Shown: positions 14,097 through 31,805 of the stretch, one piece after another
Position numbering within the stretch: position 1 is the first letter of the stretch
Layout of the letters: every line of letters starts with the position of its first letter
Sequence record: NC_061441.1
Length of the DNA: 64,000 nucleotides
Direction: 5' to 3' (one strand)
The notes under the pieces: generated by a model
Databases searched by the model: none
The model's input: the letters and a program-made list of their open reading frames with translations, nothing else
Told to the model about the DNA's origin: nothing
Made by a program: the position numbers and the translations under genes

Positions 14097-14966
14097 ATGG
14101 CTAAACATCCTCTTCGCAAGCTGTTTGAACAGCACGTAAAGAAAGAGGTCAAAGCCAAAGAAGTGGCCGTTCTGCTTTCGAGCGGCCTCGATGGTTTGGT
14201 TAGCGCACTCGCGGCGCACGATCTCGGCATGAAGGTACATGCCTTTACTTTTCAGATGGGCGACGACCAGAGCTTCGACAGCAAACACGCTGCAATCGTA
14301 GCCCAGAAAATGGGCTGGGAGTTCACGCTCGTTAAGGTGCCAGACTCTGATAGTGCAATCGCCAAAGGCTGGAAGACGTTGCACAAGAATTTCCGCTGCA
14401 TCAAAAAGCGTGATTACGAGTGTGCGTACCCTATGGTGTACTGCTACAAAGCGATCAAAGATGCAGGCTTGAAATACGTGCTTAGTGGTCTGGTGGCTGA
14501 CGGTTACTTCCTGTATAACCGAAACACGCACATTCAGAAAGTAAGCGGCCCGCACTCTATCGCTGAAAAGTATCACGCGTACCGCACCGAATACTTCCGA
14601 CCGTGGATCAAAAGCGGTAAGAAGTCGCTCGGCGTTGACGGCTATAACCCGAGCGGTATGCTGCAACACGAATTGCTGTGTGACCACTTCGGCCTTGTTC
14701 ACGTTAACCCGTGGATGCAGCCGAAAGTATTTGATTACTTCATCAAGTACACATGGCAAGAGTTAAATATGCCTAAGCAGAAAATGCCAATAACAACGGC
14801 TTGGGCAGATCACATCGCAGTTGTTGGACATCGTCCACATCGCGGCTATCAAACAGAAGCTGGAGTGCCTGCGCACTTCGAACGCTTACTGGATAATCCT
14901 GAGATCAACTTCAACGGCCGCAAGCGCATCATGGACGTGGCCCGCGATTGGTCAACGAGGACTTAA
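14097..14966 (+). CDS. asparagine-synthetase-like ATP-dependent amide ligase, synthetase domain only (CmoY-like candidate)
   Basis: PP-loop VAVLLSSGLDG, HAFTF, DSKHAAIVAQKMG, VLSGLVADGYF; no N-terminal Ntn glutaminase domain. Confidence 0.75.
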   Translation: MAKHPLRKLFEQHVKKEVKAKEVAVLLSSGLDGLVSALAAHDLGMKVHAFTFQMGDDQSFDSKHAAIVAQKMGWEFTLVKVPDSDSAIAKGWKTLHKNFRCIKKRDYECAYPMVYCYKAIKDAGLKYVLSGLVADGYFLYNRNTHIQKVSGPHSIAEKYHAYRTEYFRPWIKSGKKSLGVDGYNPSGMLQHELLCDHFGLVHVNPWMQPKVFDYFIKYTWQELNMPKQKMPITTAWADHIAVVGHRPHRGYQTEAGVPAHFERLLDNPEINFNGRKRIMDVARDWSTRT

Positions 14967-20731: not shown

Positions 20732-21237
20732 CCGAACTACCAATGTCTGCGGAGCAGGCCGAACACATCATGGCGAGTGTGTTTACTCTGGCCGGTGCTT
20801 CTAAATCCAAGCGTCGTGCGACTGCTGCAATGCTCATTCATTTTCATGACGGCTTCCCTACTATTATCAGTAGCGGTGTCAACGGTACTATGCCAGGCGA
20901 AAGCAACGTCATGGAAACTCCTGACCTGACTCTCTCGCTCAACACTGTTATCCATGCAGAGGTGAACTGCCTCAATCGCATGGAAGAATACAGTCTGTGG
21001 GCAAACGAACAGGACATTCTGTTCTGCACTGATTCGCCGTGTCCTAACTGCTTGGCGGATCTCGAAGCCGAAGGTGTGAAGACCGTTGTGTATGCGCGTG
21101 AGTATCGCCTGACTGATCATCTGGACGCATCTTCGATTAAGATGTTCTGTCTGGATATGAAGTCCGTTGAGCACCGTATGCTTCGCGGTATCGAGCGCAT
21201 GAACGAAGTTATCGCAACAACACCAGCGTCTGAATAA
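20716..21237 (+). CDS. dCMP deaminase-like zinc deaminase
   Basis: SGVNG, HAEVN and SPCPNC motifs. Confidence 0.85.
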   Translation: MRCNLTELPMSAEQAEHIMASVFTLAGASKSKRRATAAMLIHFHDGFPTIISSGVNGTMPGESNVMETPDLTLSLNTVIHAEVNCLNRMEEYSLWANEQDILFCTDSPCPNCLADLEAEGVKTVVYAREYRLTDHLDASSIKMFCLDMKSVEHRMLRGIERMNEVIATTPASE

Positions 21238-21963: not shown

Positions 21964-22446
21964 GTGGAACCTTTCCTGAAAGATATCAAAGACCGTTTCG
22001 CTTCTGCATTGGGAATCGACCCTAAAGTCCTCGATGCGCCTGTGGACGAAGAATCCGCTGAACGTTTTGGTGCGTTCCTGCGTGAAGACCAGCGCAAAAT
22101 CAAAGTAGGTCTTGCGCTCTGTCATCTCCAAATCCCAGATGATGTTCGTTATGACCTGCTGCATAATCATCTGGACACTACTGACCGTGTACTGCGTGAA
22201 ACGTTCGACGGTCTCGCTGCCCGACTTGTTGCTGTTAACAGCGCAGGTGGTGGCGATGAAAAACAAGCGGCGTCTGGTGCGTTTCGTCTAGCTATGCTGA
22301 TGAACATACTGGGCTTCGATGACCAAACACTGAAAGGTGTGTTAACCGACCCAAGCCTCTCTCGTCAGGCTGGTCTTATTGCAATGACTGGCCTGAACGA
22401 TATGGGTCAGAAAATCCAATCGCTTTACGACGAGAAAACAAAATGA
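21964..22446 (+). CDS. hypothetical protein
   Basis: AAGGA RBS, GTG start. Confidence 0.65.
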   Translation: MEPFLKDIKDRFASALGIDPKVLDAPVDEESAERFGAFLREDQRKIKVGLALCHLQIPDDVRYDLLHNHLDTTDRVLRETFDGLAARLVAVNSAGGGDEKQAASGAFRLAMLMNILGFDDQTLKGVLTDPSLSRQAGLIAMTGLNDMGQKIQSLYDEKTK

Positions 22447-22607
22447 GCAACCCGACTAATCCATTAGCAGATTACTTCAACGCTGACGCAGTTATCCCAG
22501 GTGTAGACGATGCAGAAGATCGTGTCGAAGCTATGCGTGACGGTGGTGGCGAAGTTGTTGACGATAAAGATGCTGATGGCTGTGAAAGCGGCGCCTGCAA
22601 AATCTAA
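22443..22607 (+). CDS. 54-aa acidic peptide ending in the NrdA redox tail DGCESGACKI
   Basis: Hand-translated (below ORF-track cutoff); ATGA-coupled to the upstream gene and followed directly by a terminator. Confidence 0.7.
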   Translation: MSNPTNPLADYFNADAVIPGVDDAEDRVEAMRDGGGEVVDDKDADGCESGACKI

Positions 22608-22610
22608 CTC

Positions 22611-22638
22611 ATGGGGCCTAGTGCCCCATTTCTGTTTT
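22611..22638 (+). terminator. rho-independent terminator
   Basis: ATGGGGC-CTAGT-GCCCCAT then TTCTGTTTT. Confidence 0.6.
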
Positions 22639-22648
22639 GGGGAATTTT

Positions 22649-23188
22649 ATGCAAACAGCATACCGTTGTAAGCATTGCAAGTATGTTCACAATGACAAGG
22701 TAAGTAGCTGCGACTGTCAGGGCAGTAAAAAGTTTGAATACACGTTGGTGCAAATCATCGACGTGCCTGAGAACGAAGACGGTGTACCTCCGTTCAAAGA
22801 TCTCAAACACTCTCGCGCTCAACGTTACGTCAACGTAAAGAACGGCACTTACGGTAACGGCATCTATGAGTTGCGTGAAGTGCGCACCAATGTAGACGGC
22901 GATGATCGCTACTGGTGGACCAACATCGGTAATATGCAGAGTGGTCTGGATCGTTCCGACCTCGGTATGAAGATGGTGGAAGCAAACATGCGAGCTAACT
23001 GTGTGCTGGCTGCTGCTGGTCCTGTTATGCTTGAGGCGCTCTACATGGCCTATCAGTATTTCCATCGTAAGCGCCTGGTGCAAGGCGATACGCCACAGAC
23101 TGCTATGCGTATCTCAGTAATAGCCGATGCAATTCGTCAGGGCACAGACCTGTCTGTGTTCGACACACCTCAAGTACCTAAGGAGTGA
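22649..23188 (+). CDS. hypothetical protein with N-terminal Cys cluster
   Basis: CKHC...CDC. Confidence 0.6.
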   Translation: MQTAYRCKHCKYVHNDKVSSCDCQGSKKFEYTLVQIIDVPENEDGVPPFKDLKHSRAQRYVNVKNGTYGNGIYELREVRTNVDGDDRYWWTNIGNMQSGLDRSDLGMKMVEANMRANCVLAAAGPVMLEALYMAYQYFHRKRLVQGDTPQTAMRISVIADAIRQGTDLSVFDTPQVPKE

Positions 23189-25612: not shown

Positions 25613-25916
25613 CCTGCTGGTAAAGATGTTCGGCCAGAACAAGCCATTCATCGTCGTGCGCCGTGACGCTACCGTGGAGAACGAAAAGCGTTTCGGTGAT
25701 CGCGTTTACTTCTCTAATGGCGTTAACACCGTCACTGTGCCAAACATTCAAGGGCTTGACCTGGGTGATAAGCTCTACATTGCAGAAGACGGCGATGTGT
25801 ATGAGTGGCATCCTCACTTCGAGCGTCCTTACGAAGCAGTATCGAACAACCAGACAGAAGCTCTGGCGTTTGGTCTGCATCCCATTGTCTTCCACACCGA
25901 CACACGGAACAGCTAA
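25566..25916 (+). CDS. hypothetical protein
   Basis: ORF coupled to thyA (TAATG). Confidence 0.55.
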   Translation: MKMPTPVILLKQQTRDLLVKMFGQNKPFIVVRRDATVENEKRFGDRVYFSNGVNTVTVPNIQGLDLGDKLYIAEDGDVYEWHPHFERPYEAVSNNQTEALAFGLHPIVFHTDTRNS

Positions 25917-27013
25917 TGTCACAACCACTTGATTTACGAAACCCGAACCACTACGAACTGTACTCTCTCCATAGCGTGGACGAGCAGTATATCAACCTGT
26001 GCGATGCAATCATTGCTACTGGTACGCAAGAGTCCGATGCTGGTCGCACCGACGATACGTGGACGACTCTGATTGGCGTTGGTTTCCAGTTGCAGAACAC
26101 GCACATTGCTTTCCCTGCACTGCTGTCCGCACGTAAGAACTGGAGCGCAGCCGTCGATGAGATGTGCTGGATGGCTCGCGGTGAAACGAACATCAACACT
26201 CTCGGCTCTAAGATCTGGGACGAGTGGGCAGATGAAAGCGGTGAGTGCGGTCCAATCTATGGCGAGATGTGGCGCCGTTGGCCTGACATTAAAGCGTTCT
26301 TCGACTACACGCAGCCTATGGCGTCTTGCCCTACTGCCGATGTTATTCGTGTACGTGACGAAATCCTGCGTATGCGTCAGGACGGCTACATCGAAACGCA
26401 ACTGACTGACGGTCGCATCCTGTTTGAAGGTGAGATTGACCAGTTCGCTAACGCTCTGTATCACATTGAAAACCGTTCGCGTTCTCGCCGCATTCGTGTG
26501 CAGGGTTTCAACCCAAGCTATGTGAACATGCAGGGTCTTCCTCCGTGTCACACTGAGTTTGAGTTCAACGTAACGAAGTCCACCAAGTACGAACAGGCGC
26601 AGGCCGATGTCCGCGGTCAGACGGTAGCGCAGGACAGTCTGCATATCACTGTCACCATGCGCAGCAACGACTGCCTGCTTGGGCGTCCTTTCAACATCAT
26701 CGGTTACAGTGCGATGCACCAACTGATTGCGAAGTGGGCCGGCCTGAACGTTGGCGGCTTTACGCTGAATACGACGAACACGCACCTGTACGATCATCAC
26801 CGTGAAGCATACGCTAAACAGCGTGAGCAGTGGATGACGTTGCGTGAACGTATGCAGACAACTGGCGAGCCTGTGAAATATCCTGTGCTCGAAATCTCCG
26901 ATGATGTTATAGGTCTGACAGCCAAAGAACTGCTGGACAACGTTAACATAGACTGGTTCGAGCTGGTGGACTACAGCCCGCTGCCAGCAGTAAAAGGACG
27001 TGTGACCAAATGA
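25916..27013 (+). CDS. thyA: thymidylate synthase
   Basis: KIWDEWADE.GE.GPIYG..WR, LPPCH, MRSND...PFN, HLYD.H. Confidence 0.93.
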   Translation: MSQPLDLRNPNHYELYSLHSVDEQYINLCDAIIATGTQESDAGRTDDTWTTLIGVGFQLQNTHIAFPALLSARKNWSAAVDEMCWMARGETNINTLGSKIWDEWADESGECGPIYGEMWRRWPDIKAFFDYTQPMASCPTADVIRVRDEILRMRQDGYIETQLTDGRILFEGEIDQFANALYHIENRSRSRRIRVQGFNPSYVNMQGLPPCHTEFEFNVTKSTKYEQAQADVRGQTVAQDSLHITVTMRSNDCLLGRPFNIIGYSAMHQLIAKWAGLNVGGFTLNTTNTHLYDHHREAYAKQREQWMTLRERMQTTGEPVKYPVLEISDDVIGLTAKELLDNVNIDWFELVDYSPLPAVKGRVTK

Positions 27014-29675: not shown

Positions 29676-31805
29676 ATGATCATCAAGCCGCCTACTATGA
29701 AGGAAATCAACAAGCTGGATAAACCCTGGCGTGGTATGAGTTTCTTCGCAGGTTGCGGTGGATCTTCTACCGGTCACAAGATGGCCGGTATCAACATCCT
29801 GTTGAGTAACGAGTTCGTGGATAGTGCCCGCGAGTCTTACGAAGCAAACCATCCGACTACTAAAGTGCTGCCGCATGATATTCGTCGTCTGGACCCAAGC
29901 AAGCTCATGCGTTATTGCGGCTTGGCGAAAGGCGAACTGGATTTACTTGACGGCAGTCCTCCGTGCTTCACCGAAGACACCATCATTCATACAGCAGACG
30001 GCATGAAGTTCATCTCGGACATGAATGTCGGCGATCAAGCAATGACCTCTGTTGGTCGTTACTTCCCTGTGTACGATACTATGGTTCGTCCGTACGTCGG
30101 CACGATGCACAAAATCGAAACTCTGCTGGGCGCAAACAACGCTACACCAGAGCATCCGTTCTTTGTCAGACGCAGCATTCCTACTGGCGGTTACACTGAC
30201 CCGTTCTGGTGTGATGCGAAAGACGTTCAGGAAGGTGATCTGTTAGGTAGCCCACGCACTACGCCTGACATGGGACTCGACGTGTATCAGTCGCAACTCG
30301 ATCAGCTGCCGAAGCAGATTGCAGAGTGGAGCACATTCCCTGAGTTCTGGTGGATGGTTGGACACTGGTGTGATCGCGGTTCGATTGAAACCGTGAGTGG
30401 TGTTGAAGTCGTTAGCTTTGAATCTCACTCAAGCCTCGAAAATGCAATGATTGAGCAGGCGTTTGACGCGCTGAAAATCAGCAGCCTGAACCGTATCGAC
30501 ACGATGACAGCACAACGCAAAACGTTCCGTATCGTTATGGACGCAGAGCTGGTGCAGTTCTTACGTCGATTCGTATCTCAGGGTAACAACAAGTTCTCTC
30601 GTCGTCTGCCTGCGATTGTCTTCCACCTGACAGTCGAGTTGAAGCAACAATTCATTCTCGGTTGTGCTGGTCATGACTATGTGACTGGTATGGGTACCGG
30701 CTTGGCGATCACCTCAGATAGCCGTCGCTTCCTGATTGAGTTGAACTACCTGTGCTGTTCTGCATTCAACAGACCGCTGTTCGATGGTCTGACTTGGGGC
30801 GACGTTTACTTCGGCAGCCCGATGACTCCGCGTGATCGTAACAGTGCTAAGCCTCTCATTGGCTTCCTGTTCCTGCAGGACGAGCACAACTTCTTCCACG
30901 AGTTCGATGACGCTGACCCGCATTTGTGGGTAGAAGTGATTGAGAACCTCGCGTATCAGGCAACCTGTGACGTGTATAACTTCTCCGTTGAGACGGACGA
31001 GACATACGTTGCAAACAGCATGGTCGTTCACAACTGCAAAGGCTTCTCTACTGCTGGTGTGAAGGAAGAAGGCTGGGGCAAGGAAGTTAAATACAGCGAC
31101 AACAAGTATCAGCAGGTAGATGACCTGTTCGATCAGTATTGTCGTATGCTGGAAGGCATGAAGCCGAAGGTGTTCACTGCGGAAAACGTGAGCGGCCTTG
31201 TGAAGGGCGCATCGAAAGGTTACTTCCTTGAAATCATGAAGGAGTTCGACCGAATCGGTTATTACGTCCGGGCACCGATGCTTAATGCCGCATGGCTGGG
31301 TGTGCCGCAATCGCGTGAGCGTATAATCTTCATGGGTGTACGCAAAGACGTTGCACACGCACTTGGTTACAAGACCGCTGCGACCGCTGTGCCGAATGTT
31401 GTTCCGTGTGACAGCATGGCGTTCCTTGCCGATGCTCTGCCGCACATCCTGCGCTACAAGTCCACGAAGAAAGATATCATCACCTATCTTCCTGCGATGA
31501 ACGGACCGATGCCTACGATTACTGCTGCCGATGCGATTGCATATGAGACTGCGCGTTTCTCGTCTGCGGGATTCGTCGAGGACAACAAAGGTCATCGCCG
31601 TAAACTGACTATCGACGAACTCAAAGTGATATCGGGTTTGCCCTCAGACTACAAACTGAAAGGCAAATTCGAAGAACAGTGGGAACGTCTTGGTCGTATC
31701 TGTGTGCCTGCAATGACACACGCTGCGGCTAAAGCGCTCATCGAACACGTCCTGATTCCTTACGCGAAGAAACGTAAGAAGAAGCCAGGCGATATCTTTA
31801 AGTAA
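29676..31805 (+). CDS. C5-cytosine DNA methyltransferase homolog, predicted carboxymethyltransferase (CmoX-like), intein-containing; about 352 aa after splicing
   Basis: Motif I FFAGCGG, IV GSPP-C-KGFS after splicing, VI ENVSG, VIII QSRER; motif X reads LGRICVP instead of GN(A/S)V. Confidence 0.88.
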   Translation: MIIKPPTMKEINKLDKPWRGMSFFAGCGGSSTGHKMAGINILLSNEFVDSARESYEANHPTTKVLPHDIRRLDPSKLMRYCGLAKGELDLLDGSPPCFTEDTIIHTADGMKFISDMNVGDQAMTSVGRYFPVYDTMVRPYVGTMHKIETLLGANNATPEHPFFVRRSIPTGGYTDPFWCDAKDVQEGDLLGSPRTTPDMGLDVYQSQLDQLPKQIAEWSTFPEFWWMVGHWCDRGSIETVSGVEVVSFESHSSLENAMIEQAFDALKISSLNRIDTMTAQRKTFRIVMDAELVQFLRRFVSQGNNKFSRRLPAIVFHLTVELKQQFILGCAGHDYVTGMGTGLAITSDSRRFLIELNYLCCSAFNRPLFDGLTWGDVYFGSPMTPRDRNSAKPLIGFLFLQDEHNFFHEFDDADPHLWVEVIENLAYQATCDVYNFSVETDETYVANSMVVHNCKGFSTAGVKEEGWGKEVKYSDNKYQQVDDLFDQYCRMLEGMKPKVFTAENVSGLVKGASKGYFLEIMKEFDRIGYYVRAPMLNAAWLGVPQSRERIIFMGVRKDVAHALGYKTAATAVPNVVPCDSMAFLADALPHILRYKSTKKDIITYLPAMNGPMPTITAADAIAYETARFSSAGFVEDNKGHRRKLTIDELKVISGLPSDYKLKGKFEEQWERLGRICVPAMTHAAAKALIEHVLIPYAKKRKKKPGDIFK
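29964..31034 (+). mobile_element. intein (357 aa) with degenerate LAGLIDADG region, inserted directly before the catalytic Cys
   Basis: Starts C-FTEDT, block B ATPEHPF, block F VYNFSVETDETYVAN, ends VHN followed by +1 Cys. Confidence 0.92.

Follow-up and report, generated by a model that had tools for sequence, protein, structure and literature searches.

Why should a phage that has no ribonucleotide reductase (RNR) carry a small gene whose product ends exactly as that enzyme does? The question is raised by gp034 (MPK64_gp034), a short coding sequence of Erwinia phage pEa_SNUABM_16, a jumbo phage (266.8 kb, genus Alexandravirus) whose host is the fire-blight bacterium Erwinia amylovora. The window, that is, the whole stretch of 64,000 nucleotides analysed, corresponds to bases 1-64000 of its genome (NC_061441.1). 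The gp034 product is labelled a hypothetical protein in RefSeq, and the gene is also present in a program-made listing of open reading frames (ORFs); its translation is the same as that quoted in an earlier, sequence-only reading of the window. The peptide is acidic (isoelectric point 4.05; 14 Asp and Glu against 4 Lys and Arg). Here we report that the C-terminal 23 residues of gp034 are a detached copy of a single module of NrdA, the alpha subunit of class Ia RNR, namely its disordered redox tail. The occurrence of this detached tail in many unrelated enterobacterial phages suggests that phages tap host DNA-precursor synthesis. As far as we could find, there is no earlier description of an RNR tail that stands by itself, and no publication on the family was retrieved by keyword or by tail strings.

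The final ten residues of gp034 (45-54) are identical to residues 752-761 of Escherichia coli NrdA (10/10, C-terminus on C-terminus; PDB chains such as 2xax). An end-anchored match of this kind has an estimated probability of about 1e-13 per position; the six reading frames of the window together offer about 1.3e5 positions, and the match cannot have arisen by chance. The same ten residues, followed by a stop codon, close nrdA in at least 120 bacterial species, nearly all of them Enterobacterales and with Erwinia and Pantoea among them. The likeness continues upstream, where residues 32-54 of gp034 are collinear with the last 27 residues of NrdA in a local alignment that has one 4-residue gap and a shared R-D-G at its start; in tblastn, identity was 55.6% across 27 aa. 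Both the ten-residue ending and the upstream "RDG..DD" echo, which the sequence-only reading had put forward, thus proved real. The tails of the NrdA proteins of E. coli, phage Privateer and phage W70 all begin with T-R-D-G, and in phage NrdA this is followed by an acidic linker of varying length and then by C-E-S-G-A-C-K-I/L. The distance from RDG to the first Cys, 13 residues in gp034, falls within the 8-17 residues of the NrdA tails compared. Since phage NrdA tails follow the same plan, gp034 copies the whole disordered tail, from the end of the NrdA fold.

Searches in other directions led back to the same enzyme. Among 50,697 phage records examined with tblastn, the genuine matches outside the gp034 family were NrdA C-termini only, and those in Proteus, Cronobacter and some Escherichia phages were the C-termini of phage NrdA genes; matches in Pseudomonas phages and microviruses were weak, had no tail and were rejected as spurious. 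A profile search of the PDB gave end-anchored matches only to E. coli NrdA and to chain B of 1QFN, a 25-residue fragment of the same enzyme according to its deposition. We take 1QFN to be the nuclear magnetic resonance complex of an NrdA peptide with E. coli glutaredoxin-1. Its chain B is a free NrdA-tail peptide, and gp034 spans the same residues; 1QFN is, however, a peptide made in the laboratory, with Ser in place of one Cys, whereas the naturally occurring gp034 has kept both cysteines; by analogy, it may bind a redoxin.

The gp034 protein itself stands outside the NrdA family. It lacks the ten-stranded barrel (Ribonuc_red_lgC, PF02867) and the N-terminal and ATP-cone domains, and it has no RNR match in Pfam; what it has in common with NrdA is a C-terminal tail predicted as coil with a redox-type Cys pair near the end. 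A thioredoxin or glutaredoxin fold was not found either, as there was no Pfam match and the AlphaFold2 model (61-sequence alignment, mean predicted local distance difference test score, pLDDT, of 63.6) contains one short helix, with coil elsewhere and the cysteines in the terminal coil. In comparison with the NrdA tail of E. coli and Erwinia (about residues 735-761, with C754 and C759), gp034 has in common the last ten residues, the RDG hinge, the acidic linker, the C-x4-C-K-I ending, the predicted disorder and a last Cys two residues from the end. It differs in having no RNR body and in being a 54-aa gene of its own, while other members of its family are fused to phage domains; the GGG-E motif and the acidic helical N-half are features of the gp034 family that are absent from NrdA.

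We examined the possibility of a recent capture of DNA from a host nrdA and rejected it, as the likeness at the DNA level is confined to the ten codons and the G + C content is the same as that of the flanks. The 48 nt preceding these codons are at random level against nrdA (median 35%, ungapped), and the downstream flanks at five Erwinia loci bear no evident likeness to it. A second candidate, mimicry of the NrdB C-terminal tail by the N-half of the gp034 family, found no support in the family as a whole (median z against shuffles 0.07); one subfamily (P0006, P0012 and others) begins with M-S-G-K-D-L-S-S-Y-L and has an N-half z of 2-3 against the NrdB tail, which likewise has S-S-Y-L. A separate observation concerns the bacterial sequences: of 120 contigs with the exact enterobacterial nrdA ending, that of Oxalobacter formigenes strain OxB (L072) represents the sole named non-enterobacterial genome, which may be due to contamination or transfer.

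The gene is well maintained. Among Alexandraviruses, the pairwise ratio of nonsynonymous to synonymous substitution rates (dN/dS) of gp034 ranges from 0 to 0.19, indicating purifying selection, and the protein is 94-100% identical in relatives with local DNA of 78-88% identity; in one relative with 88% identical surrounding DNA it is unchanged. Its nucleotide identity to relatives is 93-98%. In the two more distant relatives, positions 22443-22648 (gp034 and the terminator) stand out as an island, the best-conserved DNA of the locality, with 90-95% nucleotide identity against 60-82% on either side; in the closest relative, the upstream gene gp033 is as conserved as gp034 (98%). Across relatives, the intergenic stretch with the terminator keeps 90-100% identity, and Rfam gave no credible match that would point to an RNA element behind this conservation of DNA. 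In one and the same pair of phages, dS is 0.2 in gp034 versus 1.25-1.38 in gp033 and gp035, which may reflect translational selection or recent exchange; no compositional anomaly was seen at the gene. In the present phage, gp034 overlaps the gene before it by an ATGA (Table 1); in Y3, SNUABM_23, SNUABM_46, AD1 and SNUABM_2, the homologue likewise overlaps or abuts its upstream neighbour, and a terminator is annotated directly 3' of the homologue in Klebsiella phage Miami too. Judged by this pattern of conservation, gp034 is a functional small phage protein under purifying selection.

No RNR is annotated in the 266.8-kb genome of pEa_SNUABM_16. A tblastn search with E. coli NrdA and NrdB matched gp034 alone, and the 28 ORFs of at least 500 aa yielded no Pfam family of class I, II or III RNR (no PF02867, no PF13597). 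A thioredoxin or glutaredoxin of the phage was not found in a screen that was only weak (CxxC-motif filter, then Pfam). Because the phage has no RNR, the tail can act on host components only. An independent observation is that gp277 (outside the window, L009:39207-40727, +) encodes a 506-aa radical-SAM protein (PF04055 and Fer4_12) in this phage without a glycyl-radical RNR.

The sequence-only reading thus stood in part. It had described a gene coupled to its upstream neighbour, followed by a terminator, without an adjoining RNR catalytic domain, apparently maintained and with an ending that matches NrdA, and it had proposed dN/dS and searches of related phages as checks; the overlap, the hairpin with its T-tract, the selection values, the whole-genome absence of RNR and the family described below all agree with this. 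The likeness to the RNR tail moreover extends further than that reading had it. Its suggestion of a partnership with a tail-less phage RNR elsewhere in the genome fell for this phage, in which the searches above found no RNR; its two other suggestions, a trans-acting redox shuttle and a thioredoxin/glutaredoxin decoy, are equally compatible with the sequence. Split RNRs do exist: in the class II enzyme of Pseudomonas aeruginosa (NrdJa/NrdJb), the redox Cys pair is on a separate polypeptide, NrdJb, and an Aeromonas phage has an nrdA split by a homing endonuclease. NrdJb, however, has part of the enzyme body and its partner is encoded in the same genome, whereas pEa_SNUABM_16 has no RNR body at all. 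A decaying remnant of a deleted nrdA is excluded by purifying selection together with conservation over at least six phage lineages, and it also disagrees with DNA likeness limited to ten codons, random-level flanks and a normal composition. Both of these options, a tail encoded apart from a split or tail-less RNR of the phage itself and such a remnant, are therefore extremely improbable.

The module is widespread in phages. Using tblastn and profile searches, we assembled a family of 98 protein clusters from at least six phage lineages, and about 110 or more public phage records hold it. Carriers are the genus Alexandravirus, which includes pEa_SNUABM_16; Sasquatchvirus Y3; Yoloswag, with a fused form; Salmondvirus JA11, JA13 and JA29; Serratia phage PCH45, which is nucleus-forming according to the literature; Klebsiella phage Miami, whose annotated neighbours match proteins of the PCH45 phage group; Salmonella phage SA002, also with a fused form; pEa_SNUABM_37 and pEa_SNUABM_54; Yersinia phage fHe-Yen9-02; and the phiEcoM-GJ1/ST32 group (Chaseviridae, 52 kb), in which the ORF is without annotation in NC_010106.1. 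A scan of IMG/VR returned only isolates already known. The true carriers are without exception phages of Enterobacterales, and the NrdA of these hosts has the same tail. When 1.84 billion representative proteins were searched with the family profile, 49 clusters were significant at E <= 1e-3, and none was an RNR. Two PHROGs profiles, phrog_24014 and phrog_10239, span the module, and both are listed there as of unknown function; the match of gp034 to the former (E 0.038) is below usual significance, while E is about 1e-10 for members of the Yoloswag type against the latter.

Every member has the module at its extreme C-terminus, and in all 98 clusters C-x(2-4)-C-x-[I/L] closes the sequence. The Cys spacing is 4 in 71, 3 in 9 and 2 in 18 clusters, and the final residue is I in 96 of them. 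A GGG[E/V/M] motif is present in 88 of the 98 clusters, with 8-11 residues between GGG and the first Cys, and G34, G35, G36 and E37 are kept in at least 90% of family members. Most members are free-standing (about 41-65 aa); in 19 of the 98 clusters, the proteins have 90-462 aa and carry the module behind unrelated N-domains, for which Pfam gave no match. These N-domains stand as a separate upstream gene in relatives, which points to recurrent fusion and fission.

With the family in hand, it can be asked whether the Cys pair serves a purpose that has nothing to do with RNR, for example in metal binding or in a modified-peptide precursor, with the likeness to NrdA a result of convergence. The profile score against NrdA comes only from the last 8-12 residues (HMMER E-values of 0.5-2, weak because the match is short), no full-length RNR is among the 49 significant clusters, and the Cys spacing varies from 2 to 4, all of which would suit such a function. 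The acidic leader-like N-half and the glycine run of gp034 may bear a loose resemblance to bacteriocin-type leaders. Identity in ten of ten residues, the RDG hinge and the linker length nevertheless all fit real NrdA tails, and the carriers are confined to hosts whose NrdA has this tail. Genes for modification, proteolysis or export are absent nearby, the neighbours being a dCMP deaminase, ThyA and unassigned proteins; the would-be core has no conserved Ser or Thr, and the fusions to large N-domains are unlike a secreted peptide. On balance, we consider a function unrelated to RNR distinctly improbable.

What, then, would a phage gain from the tail? The tails of class I RNRs re-reduce the active site and are reduced in turn by thioredoxin or glutaredoxin (PMC9669993, PMC11903788). 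Neither thioredoxin nor glutaredoxin is able to reach the RNR active site directly, and a second reductant route acting during tail recycling made RNR activity up to about 3-fold higher (PMC4078304). We tentatively favour the reading that gp034 is a diffusible tail, recharged by host thioredoxin or glutaredoxin, that re-reduces host NrdA in trans. Host thioredoxin or glutaredoxin would reduce the Cys pair of gp034 as it does that of NrdA's own tail, and the reduced, freely diffusing peptide would then enter the active site of host NrdA and re-reduce the disulfide left by turnover. Such a second route of re-reduction beside the tethered tail might allow more deoxynucleotide to be made from a fixed amount of host enzyme during replication of the 267-kb genome. 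The peptide would be part of the set of genes with which the phage supports its supply of deoxynucleoside triphosphates (dNTPs), together with dCMP deaminase and thymidylate synthase, and would parallel the lone NrdB of phiEcoM-GJ1-type carriers.

Three points of context lean, circumstantially, towards a role in helping RNR. The first is the position of gp034 between genes for a dCMP deaminase (gp031) and a thymidylate synthase (gp042), with a similar dNTP-gene neighbourhood in Y3, Yoloswag, JA13 and phiEcoM-GJ1. The second is an orphan NrdB: phiEcoM-GJ1 and ST32 have, along with the peptide, a class Ia NrdB with 80% identity to that of E. coli and no alpha subunit (PMC6266442), and in phiEcoM-GJ1 none was found in positions 11.6-53 kb. 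This NrdB resembles gp034 in being one host-type class Ia RNR part without alpha, in the same genomes as a family member, and differs from it in being a complete subunit of 372 aa; it is absent from pEa_SNUABM_16. The third is the dependence of the carrier phage PCH45 on host trxB (PMC11797060); on the essentiality of the PCH45 homologue, the main text of a phage transposon-sequencing preprint, as far as that text goes, has no entry.

Several observations weigh against a simple diffusible shuttle. The module is often fused or coupled to unrelated upstream proteins without conserved cysteines, for which such a shuttle has no need, and the GGG-E motif and the acidic N-half have no role in it. 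The tail variants C-x2-C and C-x3-C are out of step with the host tail. In SNUABM_37/SA002-like phages, the gene adjoins arrays of virion-protein paralogues, not dNTP genes, and in one carrier known from metagenomic sequence, NrdD/NrdG and a family A DNA polymerase are encoded within 7 kb, so that carriers are not uniformly free of RNR; RNR content was tabulated for a minority of carriers only. Finally, a free tail could equally be a competitor of the tethered one, which is present at high local concentration.

This last point leads to the opposite effect, in which a free tail competes for thioredoxin and glutaredoxin or for the entrance of the NrdA active site and so throttles host RNR or diverts redoxins, for example against host replication or competing phages. 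The mimicry of the NrdA tail would serve this equally well, and strong constraint with possibly high expression (low dS, last gene before a conserved terminator) would suit a stoichiometric competitor. Inhibition of RNR by competition with subunit tails has precedents in peptides from the small-subunit C-terminus and in yeast Sml1, a small protein that interferes with RNR tail function and has no cysteine tail. A block of the sole RNR nevertheless seems costly for a phage that has none of its own and must make a 267-kb genome, and the host-like NrdB of phiEcoM-GJ1-type carriers points to a boosting of RNR. Moreover, with two cysteines, mixed disulfides with redoxins would be expected to resolve and not to trap. 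We therefore regard a decoy or inhibitor as unlikely.

The frequent fusion or translational coupling of the module to unrelated upstream proteins, which the sequence-only reading had not anticipated, opens yet another reading, namely that of a recruiting tag or adaptor: a portable C-terminal tail that docks host thioredoxin, glutaredoxin or NrdA onto phage partners such as gp033. The partner would then be the effector, and the role need not be dNTP synthesis. The invariably C-terminal position of the module, the 19 clusters with unrelated N-domains and their recurrent fusion and fission with the upstream gene, and the conserved coupling by overlapping starts would all suit a tag. There are precedents in T7 DNA polymerase, for which a non-catalytic use of thioredoxin is cited in PMC11797060, and in a TrxA-dependent toxin, the subject of PMC11606950. 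The majority of members are free-standing, however, and phiEcoM-GJ1 has no coupled upstream gene, with a tRNA in its place. One universal partner gene was considered and rejected, since the upstream genes differ among lineages, are non-homologous by BLASTP and have no assignable function. The homologues of gp033 are limited to Alexandra/Y3-like phages, and gp033 has no conserved cysteine; its AlphaFold2 model (all-helical, mean pLDDT 65.7) is too poor for a meaningful fold comparison. A role as recruiting tag thus appears doubtful to us.

Returning to the rechargeable tail that acts on host NrdA, we propose, with somewhat more reserve, a wider scheme in which enterobacterial phages take over the host class Ia RNR piecemeal and provide its mobile or limiting parts in place of the complete enzyme: a free rechargeable alpha tail that serves as a protein "dithiol cofactor" and accelerates the re-reduction half-cycle and, in some lineages, a lone radical-bearing beta subunit. 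As a portable module, the tail would pass from one phage family to another, unrelated one and could be attached to other phage proteins. The known dNTP-boosting genes of phages are whole enzymes (nrdA/B, nrdD, thyA, redoxins). If the tail does act in trans, it would follow that flux in vivo is limited by the re-reduction half-cycle of class I RNR and that this half-cycle is open to manipulation from outside; the peptide would be a natural tool for the poorly resolved steps between tail, active site and redoxin, and the precursor supply of large phages without RNR would be explained in part. If it is a decoy or a tag instead, it would still be a clean and widespread example of a disordered host tail copied by a phage. 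An annotation would also be gained for about 98 protein clusters.

The features of the locus are listed in Table 1.

Table 1. Features of the gp034 locus of Erwinia phage pEa_SNUABM_16 (positions in the window).
Feature	Position	Strand	Basis and remarks
gp031, dCMP deaminase	20743..21237	+	PF00383, E 2.4e-10, and annotation
gp033, candidate partner, 160 aa	21964..22446	+	Translationally coupled to gp034; predicted all-helical
gp034 (MPK64_gp034) coding sequence, stop codon included	22443..22607	+	54 aa, ATG start, TAA stop
ATGA overlap, gp034 start codon on gp033 stop codon	22443..22446	+	Sequence and annotation coordinates; translational coupling
gp034 residues 21-34, short acidic helix	22503..22544	+	AlphaFold2 prediction; sole predicted secondary structure
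gp034 residues 32-37, R-D-G-G-G-E hinge motif	22536..22553	+	RDG corresponds to NrdA fold end/tail start; GGG-E is the family signature
gp034 residues 38-46, acidic flexible linker, hinge to first Cys	22554..22580	+	Comparison with family and NrdA tails
gp034 residues 45-54, ten residues identical to NrdA C-terminus	22575..22604	+	C47/C52 pair (C-x4-C), K-I end
Intrinsic-terminator-like hairpin and T-tract	22611..22639	+	7-bp stem, 5 GC; directly 3' of gp034
gp042, thymidylate synthase (annotated hypothetical)	25916..27013	+	PF00303, E 2.2e-56

Some further observations were made on the carriers and on other genes of pEa_SNUABM_16. The family member of phiEcoM-GJ1 lies at 14576-14716 of NC_010106.1 (L014:3001-3141), between tRNA-Arg and gp31, and the NrdB of that phage, gp75 (L144:34158-35276), is at the very end of the linear genome; the record labels it "NrdF", and it matches the class Ia equivalog. 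The loci of "Stenotrophomonas phage BUCTxx100" (L004) and Klebsiella phage Miami (L003) have a near-identical gene layout, in which most coordinates coincide and three early genes are displaced by 3 bases. Their peptides differ by one residue, and the stated host of BUCTxx100 may deserve a check. In pEa_SNUABM_16, gp035 (22649-23188, +), the downstream neighbour of gp034, which matches phrog_1273 (listed as of unknown function) and is conserved in Yoloswag, has an N-terminal zinc-ribbon-like cluster of the form C-x2-C ... C-x-C. The 709-aa "hypothetical" protein encoded by gp047 (29676-31805, +) is a C-5 cytosine DNA methylase (PF00145, E 1.6e-38) with an intein-like insert, whose matches to Hint and intein-splicing domains are under the Pfam cut-offs. 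Outside the window, gp133 (L007:14132-16792, -) encodes a tail-region protein with a C-terminal domain like that of VgrG3 of type VI secretion (PF21277, E 1.2e-63).

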